Assembly: GCA_977017575.1 (NCBI GenBank)
Contig: CDRNVI010000043.1
Location: 620,001 to 684,000 of the forward strand
DNA: 64,000 nucleotides
Source of the DNA: Paramoeba atlantica
Lineage: Eukaryota; Protista; Discosea
Direction of reading: 5' to 3'
Shown here: positions 5,131 through 52,844 of the stretch, one piece after another
Layout of the letters: each line of letters starts with the position of its first letter
Position numbering within the stretch: position 1 is the stretch's first letter
Notes under the pieces: model-generated
Told to the model about the DNA's origin: nothing
What the model saw: only the letters and a program-made list of their open reading frames with translations
Databases searched by the model: none
Position numbers and translations under genes: made by a program

Positions 5131-5899
5131 TAGCCTGGAAAACGGAAAGATTATAGCCAAAAATAGCCGAATTTCGGGTAAAAATGGGGTGATTTTCGCG
5201 TATTTTTGCTCTCAGAGCACTAAATCCGACATTTGCGCGTGGGAAATCACTCGTAGGCATGAATGGAAGCCTACCGAACGTATTGGGTAGAGAATGCGAC
5301 TCCAACCATACCATTCTTTCGACACAAAAATGCCCCTTTAGGTCCGAAAAATACTTTTTCTCCTTTTTTAGTCAAAAATGGGTCATATTGAGGGGCGCAC
5401 CACGGTTCGAAGAAGTGATACCTTGCGAGTGTTTTATCATGCACTTATAGTGCAGAGATTTGCTCACCATGTCCTTATCCCGCATACGACGGGTGGATCA
5501 TGTGAGGTTTCGTCCTCGCCGGAGGTGTGCGGGTGCGGAGAGCTGGCGTCCCAGGTGCAGAGAGCTCGGTTGTCATGTGCAGGTGCAGAGAGCCGGATGC
5601 GTAATCCCCATATTACAGTTTCGGGGGCAATCCGGGTGCAGAGAGCTGCGACAGAGCCGAGGTGCGGAGAGCTGGGCGACCGCCAGGTGCAGAGAGCCGA
5701 GTCTCGTCGGCGGAGGACACGTCTAGTGGTCCTCAAGGGAGGCCACCGTGACGCATGGCCCTCTCGGAGAGGAAAAAGACAAGTCGAAAAAAAGCCGAGA
5801 GGGGGAAGCACACTCACTCCAGGGGAGTGAGTCGGGGAGGGGTGAAGTGGTGAAAGCGCGTCCCCTGCTTCAGCGACAAGAGGGACAGTTCCGACCTTA

Positions 5900-36899: not shown

Positions 36900-39164
36900 G
36901 CGGGTATGACCCCGCTTGATCTCACGTGATCTCGTTTTGAGATTGCCCAACCACCCTCCGGAGCCGAATAGTGAGGTCGATAGGTCTCCCTATAAAACTC
37001 GCCAATCTCCTGCAATATCTGACCCTCTGTTGAAGCGAGCACTCGATCTTATTGATCAAACAACAAGGAATGAAACCTATGGTATCGCTTCTTGGGGCCA
37101 CCTTCTTGTAGGAGACGGTTTCAGATGCTCCCGTCGCGCTCTGATACGTTCCCTCAAGAAGGAGGGTCGTTAAGTCGTTAAGCCCTATTACAGGGCGCTG
37201 GCTCAACATAAAGCTAAGCCAACACCCTGAGCTTTGGCCACTAAGGGCTGTGGGCTGCTCGATTTAAGTGTCGAGAACTTTCAATATTAGTAAGCCATTT
37301 GCTGTGCGAGCCAGCCATGTTTCCATGGCCTTGGCTTGTATCTCACTGATTAAATCAATGAATACTACCGGCGTCGCTTTAATCAGCAGCTTTGTATTTG
37401 TCTCCAATAAGAGATGGCCAGTTTTTGGGGAAACCCCCTAAAAAAAAGGCAGGCATCAGTACTGCATCACCGCCTGCTTGCTGGCACAGTTCGGGAGTGT
37501 CGAGTCTCAGCTTCAACGGCTTAGACTCCTCAGCTTCAACGGATCAAGTCCTCTAGAGTGGCACACCCTCGAGCGGACTTGACTCCTCAGCTTCAAAGGG
37601 CTAAACCTCAGCTTCAACGATCTCTTATCTCTCCGAATTATTGCCCTAGCCCCGTTTTCATGGGCTAGTTGCAAGCCGCAGATGTGCGGTACTCGACCCG
37701 AAATGCGGTATGAAGTTCCCCTTAGGGGCTCATCTTCAGAGTGCACTCCGGGTCCATCCGAGAAGAATCTCCTCTAAAACATTAGCCCGAATGGCACCCA
37801 CCCTAGTTGCCTAGTACCTTGTTATATTCGGTACCGGGCGGTGCCACCCATTCTGCGTTGCCAGGATGACAGCTACCCTACATATTTAGTGCCTCGTTAT
37901 GTTGGCACCGGGTAGTGTCGCGAAGGGAGTGGCGCAACGAGGGGGGCGAGGAGGACAGCGCGGTCGGTGAAGGGGGCGGCGAAGGAGGCGGCGGAGAGAG
38001 CGGCGGGGAAGGCGTCGGGGAAGAGAGAAGGCAGCGACAGAGGGCGACCAAGATGGCAGCGAGGGGGCGGCGAACGTGGCGCAGCGAGGGGGCGGCTGGG
38101 GTGAGGGGGGGCGCAACGAAGAGGGGGGAGCGAGGAGGGGGCGAAGGGAGCGCACAAGTCGGCACAGAAGGAGGACGTAGAATTGGGCGGCGAGGAGGGC
38201 AGCCAGAAGGGTGACCAGGAGGGCGGTGCGGGAGGGCGCAGCTGGGCGGTTTATTCTTCGCCCAGGAGGGGTGAAAGGGGTCATTGGGGGGGTGGGTCAA
38301 AAAATAAATTAGGTCAACAACAAGGTACAACAAGGTACACACAGATTGTTGCCTCATACGTTCCCTCAAGGAGGGTATCATATCCCGCACAGTCCCCCGA
38401 AACCCTGCACTCACAAAGGAGCACAAAAGGAAACCAGTAGAGCTATGCCAGGAGTTGGCAACATGGACCCCTGCTCAGCTTGAGGCTATCGTCTGGACAG
38501 ACGAGAAAAAATTTACTTGCGGGGGCAGCCGCAAAATAACCTACCTTTGCCGTCGTTCAGACCCCCCAACGGAGCACGCCGGTGAGCGGGAAAAGTGTTA
38601 GGGAGGCGACGATATTATGGTGTGGATGGGGGTCAGCATTAAGAGTTTCTTTTTTTATGAATTCCCTAATAAGGATCAACAGGGTAATAAAATTTCAGTG
38701 AATGGGGACCTTTTCAAAAAAAAGTGCTACAACGTAACGGTTTCTTATCTTTTTTACGAAGACATCGGGGGGCAGTCGTTGCTATGGATAATTGTACAAT
38801 TCACAATAGCACTCGTCGTACCTTTATTGACGAAGGGGTGAAGATGTTGCGTTGGCCACCCAAATCCCCAGATTTAAACTCAATAGAAAACATTTGGGGA
38901 ATGATGGACGAGCATAAAAACTCGCTTTGTCCAACGAATCGTGACTTCTTTTCTCAAATCGTGAAGATTTGAGACGAGCGATCGCTTCTGGGGTCGAAAA
39001 ATTAAAAGGGGGGCAATACAATGTATTTTTGAGGGCTTTAAAGAGTGTAAAACGTAATATCACATGACACGTAACTCTGTGAGAGCGTCTCGAATGCGGT
39101 ATTATTTCCCAAAATTGGCCGAGTTATAAGAATTTTGACCCCCATATTTTCGTGCACCCCCCTG
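36900..39164 (+). mobile_element. Decayed Tc1 element, same family as 3917-11356, interrupted by a retroposon
   Basis: YGIASW...FRCSR (36916-37173), NPALTKEHKR, IVWTDEKK, MDN, WPPKSPDLNSIE; right end CCCCCCTG|TA at 39164; left end not located. Confidence 0.75.
37168..38355 (-). mobile_element. SL-headed non-coding retroposon (SINE-like) with target-site duplication
   Basis: Stacked SL 3' fragments at 38339->38318, GC-rich body, two hairpin motifs at 37799-37914, ATACGTTCCCTCAAG duplicated at 37144 and 38356. Confidence 0.72.
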
Positions 39165-43170: not shown

Positions 43171-43177
43171 CTACATA

Positions 43178-43990
43178 TTCTGTACCTTGTTGCCCCCTTT
43201 ATTACTACCACTACTACTACTACATGTACCCCTTCACCCCCCTCGCGACGACGTTGACCGCCTTCCGATTCCCACGGCCAAAACAATTAGTCCAGACTTC
43301 ATTCCGCGAATACTTGCCATATATCGAGACATTATGCAACCGTACCATCAAAGCGACTATCCGCAAAGGAACAAAATATGGAACCAAGTTCTGTCTGCTA
43401 TGAAACTGTCTCTTGCAGAGGTCCGTCAATCCAGTGTCTGTACCTTGTTGTATTTCACACAAGAAAACGCTAGATACTGCCGGTCTCGACAACTTGCAAA
43501 TTAAGATAGACACACGTACACTCCAATTCTCAGGACATGTAGCCCGCATGGGCCCTGAAAGAACACCCAACAAGGTACTCTTCGGCAATTACATGAAAAA
43601 ACATGCAAGGCCAGTCAAGTCAACAGCAGCGTATGAGAATACAATAAGAAATGCCCTAACGAGGACCGGAATGCCTACGGGCAACACATGGAAATATAGA
43701 GCCCAAAATAAAGTATCGTGGAAAACTGCTATAGAAGATTATCAAGAAGGTGGAAGGAAGAGAAAGAGGCGCAAAATACAAAACAACAAAATCCAAACAC
43801 ACAAGACTCTGAAATCAAGGTACGATCAAGGTCCCGCGGATGACACTACCCGGTGCCAACAAAACAAGGCACAAAATAACTAGGGTAACGGTCACCCAGA
43901 CATCGCAGCGTGAGAATGACACCGCCCGGTACCGGATATAACAAGGTACTAAGAAACTAGGGTGGGTGTCATTCAGCATAATCTTTGGAG
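43178..43990 (+). mobile_element. SL-headed 3' fragment of an RTE-clade LINE with paired hairpin motifs
   Basis: SL junctions at 43178-43192 and 43437-43450; ISHKKTLDTAGL...FSGHVARM...PNKVLFG...WKYRAQNKVSWK; motifs at 43847-43887 and about 43912-43975. Confidence 0.7.
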
Positions 43991-44229
43991 TGTGTTGTGT
44001 TTTTCACTTCAAAAGAAGTGTTTTTTTCATAAAGAATCTTTTCTTGTAGTATATAAAAGGGGTTAAAAAAGATAAGCTGGCTGCTCGCGCTCGATCTGGT
44101 CAAATCTTCGGATTTGACTTGCGTGCTGCGTGGCACAGCTCCTAGCAAGCGATAAGGGGGGGCTTGTCCTAGGGAGGTAACATCTCCTCGGAGATATATT
44201 GCCTTTTTTCAATCAATCAATCAAAATCC

Positions 44230-45090
44230 AGTGTCAGACAAAGACGCCGAAGACCTCTACGAGACCCGTTTAATGACGACAAGGCGGAAGAAGAAGAAGT
44301 AGCGAAAGAGGACCGAAGAGCCATCAAGAGAGTAACACGTCTTGCCTTAGAAGGCTGCGTTTCCAAAGCATGTAAAGTACTTGATCGTTCGTTTCAGAAT
44401 AAGTCACTTACAGACCAAGAAACCATACAAAAGCTGCGAGACCTGCATCCGGAACAAAACAGCAAATTTGACGCACCCGAAGATGCACCCATCATAGCTG
44501 CAGTTTCGCCGATCGAAATTCGCAGCGCCAGCAAACGGTTGGCGAAAGGCGTCAGCCCGGGTCCCACAGGAACAACGGATAGTGTTATTAGACTACTGGT
44601 TGACGACGAGCCATGTTGTGGGAGTATGTGTCACATGATGGGGGACCTGATCAACGGATTTCTTTCACGCCAAGTGATGCAAAGACTTAATCGGGCCCGT
44701 CTGGTTGCAATAGCAAAACCCGACGGAGGAGTTCGGCCTGTAGCGATTGGCGAAATATTTGGTAAGCTAGCCGGCCTGATATTGCTGCAGAGGTATGAAA
44801 AAACGCTGGAACCCCTTTTTTCTCCAATGCAACAGGGGGTGTTTTCGCAGGCGGGGTGTGAAAGAATCGTCCACAAGCTACGCGACCGATATCGAGACGG
44901 TCACACGATTCTATCTGTCGACATGAGGAATGCATTTAACACCCCTTCAAGGACCGAAATGGCCAAAAGCGTCTTTGCATTTGCAACACTCAAACCTTTC
45001 CAGAGGTTCTTCACCGCCGAATACTCCGAACCCTCTGACCTGCTGTATTTCGGTTCTGATGGCAATTTAGCGAGCATTATACCGAAATCC
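44230..45090 (+). pseudogene. CRE/SLACS-clade RT fragment (N-terminal RT subdomains)
   Basis: RRAIKRVTRLALEGCVSKA, KGVSPGPTG, GVRPVAIGE, VDMRNAFN; truncated before the QG/YxDD motifs. Confidence 0.85.
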
Positions 45091-50649: not shown

Positions 50650-51712
50650 AGCAGATTTCCGAATTTCGTACGGACGTAAGGAAAGTTTCAACTGCGCAAG
50701 AAAATCTCCAAAAAGAGTTTGGAAAACGTGATGCGGAAGTACGGAATGAAATGAAGATATTGCGCTCCATGACGATGGAAGTGACCCAAAGGTTGAACGA
50801 CCGTCAGAATCAAAAAGGGTCAAGCATAGGAACCTCTGATGCGGGTACTAGTGAAGTGCGCCACCACGAATAAGTGAACCCGAATCATTGTATGAGTCCC
50901 GACGAGTTGAAAAAAGTTATTTGCAAAGTTACTTCTCTTCTAGACAAGTACACCGTCGAGCTGGATGTTTCGTGGTACTATGAAGAATTGGGTCCAAGTG
51001 CTTTGCAAGTGTGGAAAGGAATAGCCTATCCCGGAATTGATGAAAATGGACAACCCTTTTTACAAGTCGACTATGGCCAGGGCCTGTACGCTTTACCTGA
51101 GGAAGGTGTCATGTACAACAATATTAAGATCGTATCTAAGGTTCCGAAAGATGAGGAAACTTCAGATATCTCAGGATCCGAACTTCGTGGTCAATTCTTT
51201 TTTTTTTTGGTCAATTCGAAGAGAGTTCATTTAAATGGCAGAAAGTACGAACCTGGTCTGGAATACTAAACTCTGGTGAACCGTTCTCTCTAGATATTTT
51301 GGAAAATCGGCTGAAAGAAGCATTGCAAATGCCAATTTATCTGAATGAAGAATTGAAATTTCTGTGGGAATTATTAAAACAATGGATGCGAGCAACAGCA
51401 GATCGCCAGAATGAAGCTGAAGATTCAGAAAAACATTTTGAAGTTGGACAGTTGACACTTGATCGTTTACGCATTAAACTGGGGTCATTAAAGGGCTCCG
51501 ATACTAGTTATGTGCAATCTCATTATAATGCCCACCGAAATTCAGATGACGTCTTGGGGAATTTGATCAATACAAGCGTAAATTATAACCGGGGCAGAGG
51601 ACGAGGTTTCACGCCAATGCGGGGATACCGATCAGGACAACAGAATGTTTCCGCAACATATTCACAAACCGAAACTAATCAAAAAAATCACTATGGTAGG
51701 GACATTCAACGG
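50650..51712 (+). pseudogene. 3' part of the gag-like retrocopy
   Basis: Coiled coil, stop at 50871, then VSWY...YALPEEGVMY, KVRTWSG, LWELLKQW, homologous to the YR Gag; frameshift from a poly(T)+TSD insertion. Confidence 0.7.
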
Positions 51713-52576
51713 CCTTGTTGTACCTTGTTGATGGCCTTGTGCCTGTACCTTGTTGTACCTTGTTGATCTTTTCAGTCAATTTCCCCCATGCACCCCTTCA
51801 CCCCTGGGGAAATTAAGCCCCCCTTCCGCCTCCCACTTCACCCCTAGCGCCGCCCCCTTCGCCGTCCTCTCCACCCTGCTCCGTCGCCCTTCCCGCGACC
51901 TGTTTCGCCCCCCCTCTTGGGGAGGGAGCTTGAGCTACCCCATGCGCCGCCGCCGCCGCGCTCCCCGCCGCGCTCCCACCGCGCTCCCCGCCGCGCTCCC
52001 ACCGCGCCACCCGCCGCGCTCCCGCCGCGCCACCCGCCACGCCTCTCGCCCCGCCTCCCCTTCCGCCGCTCCCTTTGCCGCCACCATTTCCGCCCCGTTT
52101 TCGCCGCCTTCTTTCGTCGCCGCTTCGCCGGCCCTTTCTCCGTCCCCCCAGTCGCCGTTCCCCTCCCCGGCCCCTTGTGTGGAGCTACCCGGTGTCAGCA
52201 AAACAAGACGCCAAGAAACTAGGGTAGTCTCCATATGCAAAAATTTAAATTGTGAAGGGCACTGGTCGAGCTCCATTGTGAGCCCCGCTGGTGAGAGAGC
52301 CTCGCAAGCTCCACACACCCTAGCGTGAGTCATCCCTGGTGGTGGAACAGAATATAACGACTGTTCCACTACTTCTTTGCCCCAGGATGCGAATCCATCG
52401 GGCATTGAAGTCACGGATAACAAGTCAGACCACGCAACCTGACAGGTATTGCTTGTCTCTCTGCGAGTGCGGCATCCCACTGGGAAAGTCTGCGCGCGAC
52501 TGACAGCGTACCACCCACGGAGTACGGTAATACCCGGTGCCGTTTCACACGAGCACTAAATAACTAGGGTGTACTC
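51713..52576 (+). mobile_element. SL-headed GC-rich SINE-like element with two hairpin motifs
   Basis: Four stacked SL fragments at 51713-51765, CCCCTTCACCCC, CCG-rich body, motifs at 52186-52226 and 52531-52571. Confidence 0.7.
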
Positions 52577-52844
52577 TGAACCCATAGCCAGTCATGGCCA
52601 AACGGGTTAAACAACAACAACCTCCCAGAGAGATATACATCCCTCCCTATCGCGAACGGGTGTCCACGCGGGGAGTGGTTTGGGGGCTGGTGGGTGGGAC
52701 AAAAAGTTTTGTATGGAGAAAAACACTTCTTCAAATAAAAGCGATAATCGTATGGACTAAACTGCATATTCAAATCATTCTAAATACAAGCGTACAATGC
52801 CCGCCGGCCATTTATCGGCGTATAAATCCCTTCGAACAATTTCT

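Follow-up and report, generated by a model that had tools for sequence, protein, structure and literature searches.

Background

Among euglenozoan retroelements, the trypanosomatid pairs ingi/RIME and L1Tc/NARTc each consist of a LINE and a short non-coding derivative with terminal sequence modules in common. The module common to these pairs is the 5' Pr77, which comprises a promoter and an HDV-like ribozyme, and the short partners are deletion derivatives that belong to a LINE clade different from the one considered here. In Mason-Pfizer monkey virus, the constitutive transport element is a duplicated 3' module whose helices present A-rich unpaired bases to a protein. In stringent-type LINEs, the stem-loop of the 3'UTR is recognised by the ORF2 protein of the LINE, and both the shape of the stem and the sequence of the loop are conserved (PMC4176376). 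The central domains of SINEs, namely CORE, V, Deu, Nin, Meta and the mollusc domain, are kept while the tails are exchanged, and their function is unknown (PMC4758252). The transposable elements of the lineage that hosts the motif described below are hardly described, and the Diplonema genome paper leaves the non-coding parts of transposable elements for later work (PMC10161547).

Here we analyze a recurring RNA hairpin of ~60 bases with a large A-rich bulge, which is located in the 3'UTRs of several RTE-like LINEs and in their non-coding partners. The window, that is, the whole stretch of DNA that was analyzed, spans 64,000 nucleotides. As in the tails of stringent LINEs (eel UnaL2/UnaSINE1, zebrafish ZfL2-1 and ZfL2-2), a 3'UTR structure is shared with non-autonomous partners, the carriers being six LINE families and three kinds of composite elements. 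However, the stem-loops of stringent LINEs are located directly upstream of the terminal repeats whereas the motif is mostly internal, and unlike these stem-loops, it occurs in 1-3 tandem copies, possesses a large conserved 3' bulge, has no sequence similarity to them, is absent from sister families and coexists with a better-fitting terminal hairpin. In its placement between a variable head and LINE tails of different origin, the motif resembles the central domains of SINEs, from which it differs in having a clear covarying fold, in being present also in the 3'UTRs of autonomous LINEs and in coming so far from one genome; furthermore, the heads of the composites are spliced-leader (SL)-capped, Pol II-type transcripts, not tRNA, 5S or 7SL as in SINEs. 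Pr77 shows no similarity to the motif, which is a hairpin in the 3'UTR of RTE-like elements, and the resemblance of the motif to the Mason-Pfizer monkey virus constitutive transport element is limited to architecture, the host lineage being different. The motif represents an RNA family that is new but of a known kind, and it shares logic, not sequence, with the LINE/SINE stem-loops and the SINE domains.

Fold and conserved bases of the motif

The motif consists of a variable outer helix closed by ACCC/GGGU, a single unpaired G, an inner 5-bp hairpin with a loop of 10-11 nt that ends in AACAA, and a bulge of 10 nt (consensus YAARNAACUA) that is present on the 3' side only. All six copies that an earlier note had reported for the window are found where it had placed them (Table 1), with the inner stems GTGCC/GGCAC, GTACC/GGTAC and GTGTC/GACGC and the outer stems GAATGACAC/GTGTCATTC, GAGTAC/GTACTC and GGAG/CTCC as described there. 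When folded singly, the six copies give one common shape, with z-scores from -2.75 to -6.1. The strict pattern CCCGGTRYC-N8-14-GRYRC-N8-12-TAGGGT matches five of them, the expectation from 100 shuffles being 0.00; the sixth copy (52533-52570), in which the 3' arm is GCAC, is missed by this pattern but scores 61 bits with the covariance model.

The unpaired bases are conserved more than the helices, across LINE families with only ~40-50% protein identity. Four bulge positions (A39, A43, U46 and A47) never vary, and two more (A44 and C45) hardly do; 15 of the 16 distinct copies have the G at the junction (G16), and 13-14 of the 16 share A-AAC-A as the 3' half of the loop. No tertiary contacts were detected: the loop and the bulge show no complementarity, and a mutual-information scan revealed nothing outside the two helices.

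Table 1. Coordinates and positions of the motif and associated features; positions without a locus prefix are those of the window
Feature	Location	Strand	Context
Motif copy, type I	43837..43898 (core 43849-43886)	+	first of the pair in the LINE A 3' region
Motif copy, type II	43913..43975 (core 43925-43963)	+	second of the LINE A pair; perfect 9-bp outer stem
Motif copy	52176..52237	+	body of composite non-autonomous element, just 5' of the borrowed LINE 3'UTR
Motif copy	52521..52582	+	part of the 3'UTR of LINE family P0002; 39 nt to the (CAA)n end of the element
Motif copy, type I	37863..37924	-	composite element
Motif copy, type II	37788..37850	-	composite element
Motif pair of P0001 (LINE A)			0 nt from the stop; the stop is the motif's own UAG
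Single motif of P0007			+21 nt from the stop
Single motif of P0011			+28 nt from the stop
Single motif of P0015			+119 nt from the stop
Motif pair of P0005			+131 nt from the stop
Single motif of P0002			+311 nt from the stop
Terminal element, P0002-type	52579..52621	+	ACCC/GGGU helix, AUA, 4-bp hairpin, CAAAC bulge, (CAA)n
Terminal element, other loci	L004 4533-4575; L007 9942-9984; L008 10570-10612; L010 10773-10822; L012 5567-5606
CUAGCCC/GGGCUAG hairpin	37672-37640 (-); L009 10335-10367; L003 about 5735-5755
GCUUGCU-loop hairpin	L008 10495-10530; L009 7095-7130; L010 10705-10740		between the motif position and the terminal element
SL relics	51712-51766; 38340-38317 (-); 43174-43190; 43432-43452
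ATG-N-ACCCCTTCACCCC	43224-43240; 51787-51804; 38284-38268 (-)

Copies beyond the window and covariation

The LINE fragment at 43452-43880 was translated and used as the query for related contigs. A word-indexed protein search with this 143-aa fragment gave no match whereas an exhaustive HMMER search succeeded, and ~15 further protein fragments were obtained with this query at 37-50% identity. The sequence examined amounts to ~195 kb of one genome, that is, the window and ~130 kb more of the assembly ENA ERZ24900291; three short environmental contigs were searched alongside the assembly contigs. A covariance model built from the six window copies (R1) identified 19 copies in the ~195 kb, 16 of them distinct, all with E < 2e-7, the next-best matches being below 14 bits. 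No diverged copies were added when all 195 kb were searched again, without filters, using a broader model (R2). All 19 copies are on the sense strand and belong to the RTE-like LINE lineage or its composites; none was found in the other retroelements (YR, CRE-like and others) of the window or of the loci. A pattern scan of metagenome contigs produced a single match, which was rejected as a chance match because its inner arms are unable to pair, and a pattern scan of viral contigs gave no match. The motif is absent from two environmental relatives of the LINE (L006 and L013), both with 3' flank.

In the model-fitted alignment of the 19 copies, 90.2% of the cells in paired columns form pairs, compared to 34-45% when the 3' partner columns are slid by 1-3 positions, and 17 of the 19 base pairs vary on both sides; covariation in this larger alignment is strong, and its score was not matched in any of 500 shuffles (0/500). 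This alignment leans to the model and also holds several near-copies. RNAalifold applied to a plain MAFFT alignment of the 16 distinct copies yields the same fold, with compensatory changes in 14 of 16 pairs. The diverged families have the inner stems GCAUC/GAUGC, AUGCC/GGCAU and GUGAU/AUCAC, and in L009, the closing helix of the core has changed coherently, from ACCC/GGGU to GUCC/GGAC. Genomic contigs matched to the window, with loose ends at 43848 and 43886, contain further copies, with the additional outer stem ATTCC/GGAAT. Given that G-U pairs are frequent in the helices and that the reverse strand scores 11-12 bits compared to 72-79 bits for the sense strand, the structure is that of the sense-strand RNA. 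The motif is a real, selected RNA structure of the sense strand, and the 19-copy alignment supports the earlier proposal that it is common to the RTE-like LINE lineage and SL-headed non-coding retroposons.

Several copies are near-identical and come from young repeat families, as would be expected if the motif had no function and simply reflected recent common descent of the repeats, or if it were a signal at the DNA level. However, the motif is kept across LINE proteins that are ~40-50% identical while the surrounding UTR is unalignable, and the many compensatory and G-U changes are sensible only for a sense-strand RNA. This explanation appears extremely improbable; the covariation counts already bring it close to refutation.

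The comparison with Rfam agrees with the view that the RNA is undescribed: there was no match at the gathering score in the whole window, and nothing relevant at E up to 10 on 43780-44020. Retroelements often host ribozymes, and the small size of the motif, with covarying helices around highly conserved unpaired nucleotides, would be compatible with a new small self-cleaving ribozyme, one of the readings put forward in the earlier note. However, the hammerhead, HDV-like, twister, twister-sister, pistol, hatchet, hairpin and other Rfam models remain unmatched at E up to 10, and loop-bulge complementarity and tertiary covariation are absent. Moreover, the motif is located between the ORF and the tail that is required for reverse transcription, and every retrocopy of a LINE or composite spans it, holding both of its flanks. 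The RNA templates were thus uncut, and efficient self-cleavage at this location would be self-defeating. The chance that the motif is a ribozyme therefore seems exceedingly small.

LINE families and the position of the motif

The LINE fragment in the window matches residues 700-842 of an RVT_1 protein of 842 aa at 99% identity. The best LINE relatives are APE+RT proteins of ~1050 aa encoded on contigs of 3.2-4.5 kb, with alignments that cover 93-98% of the query. The RVT_1 domain is clear and the endonuclease is weak (Exo_endo_phos_2 in P0006, E 0.001); the 3' ends of these LINEs are short tandem repeats of (CAAT), (CAA) or (ATC). The LINE is a single-ORF reverse transcriptase (RT) element with an RTE-like architecture.

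The region 43428..44227 (+) is a retroposed, 5'-truncated copy of LINE A that comprises, in this order, an SL relic at the head, the C-terminus of the ORF up to 43883, the motif pair and a 252-nt tail that ends in a (CAAT)-like repeat. In genomic contigs from two runs, 43427 is followed directly by 44225, so that 797 nt are missing, and 11 letters fit either side; this empty-site form indicates that the SL-headed LINE A fragment inserted as a discrete unit into another repeat. The motif pair had been described as sitting at the end of an RTE-like RT fragment: it does lie at the end of the RT ORF, but the 3' end of the element is 252 nt further downstream, at 44227. Another 5'-truncated copy of the LINE A tail, at L012 7609-7880 (-), starts at the 3' edge of motif II and has a 14-bp target-site duplication, ATGCACGAGTTCTT, on both flanks, which places the 3' terminus of LINE A precisely behind the (CAAT) repeats.

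Among ten diverged RTE-like LINE families, six contain the motif 3' of the ORF stop (Table 1), and it was not found in the four related families P0006, P0008, P0012 and P0013. In a tree of the C-termini, the presence of the motif is scattered: P0007, which has the motif, is the sister of P0012, which does not (support 94/95), and the remaining tail is common to both. The environmental relatives form a separate clade in this tree, and the branching within the within-genome clade is unresolved. In LINE A, the stop codon UAG at 43881-43883 is located inside the conserved CUAGGG of the motif, and the ORF comprises 877 open codons in L002; the other LINE families stop upstream of the motif. A stop within the motif thus seems to be particular to LINE A.

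The possibility that the UAG of the motif is a regular in-frame termination or recoding signal was considered and rejected, given that it is the true ORF stop in LINE A only. The long open frames in the composites are explained by the C-rich stretch, which is free of stops in any frame; the other two frames of the composites are closed by stops inside the motif.

Composite non-autonomous elements with spliced-leader heads

The composites share a common plan, in which spliced-leader relics are followed by a C-rich stretch, then by 1-3 motifs and finally by a LINE tail, and are of three kinds. The first, 37165..38345 (-), contains SL relics, a C-rich stretch and a motif pair that is 83% identical to that of LINE A; its tail has 87-88% identity to the 3'UTRs of P0006 and P0008 copies, both of which lack the motif, and a long imperfect direct repeat is present on its flanks. 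The second, 51712..52621 (+), starts with stacked SL relics followed by a C-rich stretch and one motif, and then includes a complete 3'UTR of the P0002 family (52245-52621), which brings that family's own motif. A second copy of this type was identified at L007 9175-9984, and since its flanks differ, this composite is a propagating family. The third kind, in L002, carries three tandem motifs. In the first kind, in the second kind and in the L007 copy, the motif is located between the C-rich head and the tail.

The word depth in contigs is 20-125 times higher for the motif than for the LINE A ORF, which implies that most motif copies are outside full LINEs, although depth does not equal copy number. 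Within 43400-44300, the highest word depth is that of the motif copy 43913..43975.

The genome encodes SL RNA genes with the exon end CAGTTTCTGTACCTTGTTG and is that of a euglenozoan protist. Relics of the SL 3' end, GTACCTTGTTG, are found single or stacked at the heads of retroposed units, which suggests that trans-spliced RNAs were reverse transcribed, in some cases through repeated cycles. Both the SL head and the word CCCCTTCACCCC previously noted in the element heads were found. In addition, ATG-N-ACCCCTTCACCCC is present in all three heads, soon after the SL relic, where the C-rich stretch begins, with slight variation in one copy; it may be a shared 5' module.

A separate terminal element at the 3' ends

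The distance from the motif to the 3' end of the element is 39 nt in the P0002 tail, ~150 nt in P0007, 252 nt in LINE A and ~620 nt in the composite 37165-38345. At least four LINE tails (P0002, P0007, P0012 and P0015) end in a separate conserved hairpin and a microsatellite. In this terminal element, the two arms of a 4-5 bp helix enclose AUA, a 4-bp hairpin and CAAAC (or CAAAA), and the microsatellite follows. The arrangement parallels that of the main motif, and both helices show covariation from family to family.

These observations bear on the proposal in the earlier note that the motif itself is the RT-recognition signal, which would set up target-primed reverse transcription as in stringent-type LINEs. 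The motif is indeed common to LINE 3'UTRs and their non-autonomous partners, in P0002 it is only 39 nt from the (CAA)n end, and the ORF2 protein of stringent LINEs likewise recognises a stem and a loop (PMC4176376). However, in the other families, the motif is ~150-250 nt from the 3' end, and in one composite ~620 nt; the distinct covarying terminal hairpin with its microsatellite is present in four tails, including that of a motif-less family; and the sisters P0007 and P0012 share a tail yet differ in the motif. A role of the motif as the RT-recognition signal accordingly appears quite improbable. The terminal hairpin with the microsatellite is most likely the priming signal and is to be ranked above the motif in this respect, given that it occupies the place of the stem-loop that is recognised by the ORF2 protein in stringent LINEs.

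Two further hairpins were observed in the 3' regions. The 3'UTRs of P0006 and P0008, which lack the motif, contain a hairpin composed of CUAGCCC, the loop AUGAUAACG and GGGCUAG, followed by GGU, in which the motif words AUAAC and CUAGGGU are present in a different arrangement. Another covarying hairpin, with the loop GCUUGCU (e.g., GCCAGCCGUGG / CUACGGCUGGC), is common to three LINE tails.

The motif as a putative accessory docking site

The explanation that we tentatively favor is that the motif is a docking site, most likely for a LINE-encoded protein, and plays an accessory role, apart from the terminal priming hairpin. Under this explanation, the motif would act in cis, as a structured RNA module in the sense transcripts of the retroelements, and docking would depend on both sequence and shape, with the two helices presenting the invariant unpaired bases. 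The LINE protein would be captured at its site of synthesis, close to the stop codon, and the terminal hairpin with the microsatellite would position the start of target-primed reverse transcription. Non-autonomous elements could then exploit the LINE protein in trans via the motif, which would have been copied, singly or in tandem arrays of up to three, into the SL-capped, non-coding retroposons with their borrowed LINE 3' tails. The closeness of the motif to the stop in five of the six families and its confinement to the LINE lineage and its parasites favor a LINE protein as the partner; the four families without the motif and the distance to the stop that ranges from 0 to 311 nt speak against it.

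The partner could instead be a host factor, for which the motif would be a position-independent docking site serving nuclear export, stability or translation of the retroelement RNA, with a logic similar to that of the constitutive transport element in simian type D retroviruses. The conserved unpaired bases of the motif are A-rich, as is common in host-protein sites of such kind, and the position of the motif is flexible, at 0-311 nt from the stop and at 39 to ~620 nt from the 3' end. The number of motifs varies as well, from one to three tandem copies, P0007 has the motif and its sister P0012 does not, and the motif is joined to tails of different LINE families, some of which resemble motif-less 3'UTRs. 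The composite 37165-38345 is a case in point: it combines a motif pair with a tail of the motif-less type, which is no harder to explain by a host factor than by a cognate LINE protein. However, in the sequence examined, the motif is found in only one LINE lineage and its composites although the YR, CRE-like and other retroelements there would profit equally from such a factor, and it has no similarity to curated cis-elements in Rfam. We consider a host factor a close rival, albeit a somewhat less likely one.

Returning to the LINE protein as the docking partner, this reading can be extended to a two-signal system, in which the position-independent motif would dock the newly made LINE protein and the terminal hairpin with the microsatellite would prime reverse transcription. 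Non-autonomous elements would then combine the capture module with the tails of whichever LINE family is active. In this complete form, the scheme is speculative and, on the present evidence, unlikely.

Implications

To our knowledge, no such element has been described for the RTE-like elements of Euglenozoa, and few 3'UTR structures shared by LINEs and SINEs have covariation support as clear as that of the motif described here. The motif is a candidate for an RNA family entry and a marker for the annotation of repeats in this genome. It is small and abundant, and on account of its invariant unpaired bases and its separation from the putative priming hairpin, it is also a tractable system for the question of how the protein of a LINE without poly(A) finds its RNA, and it may inform the role of the conserved middle part of SINEs. 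If the two-signal system is true, it would provide a concrete function for the long-unexplained central domains of SINEs.
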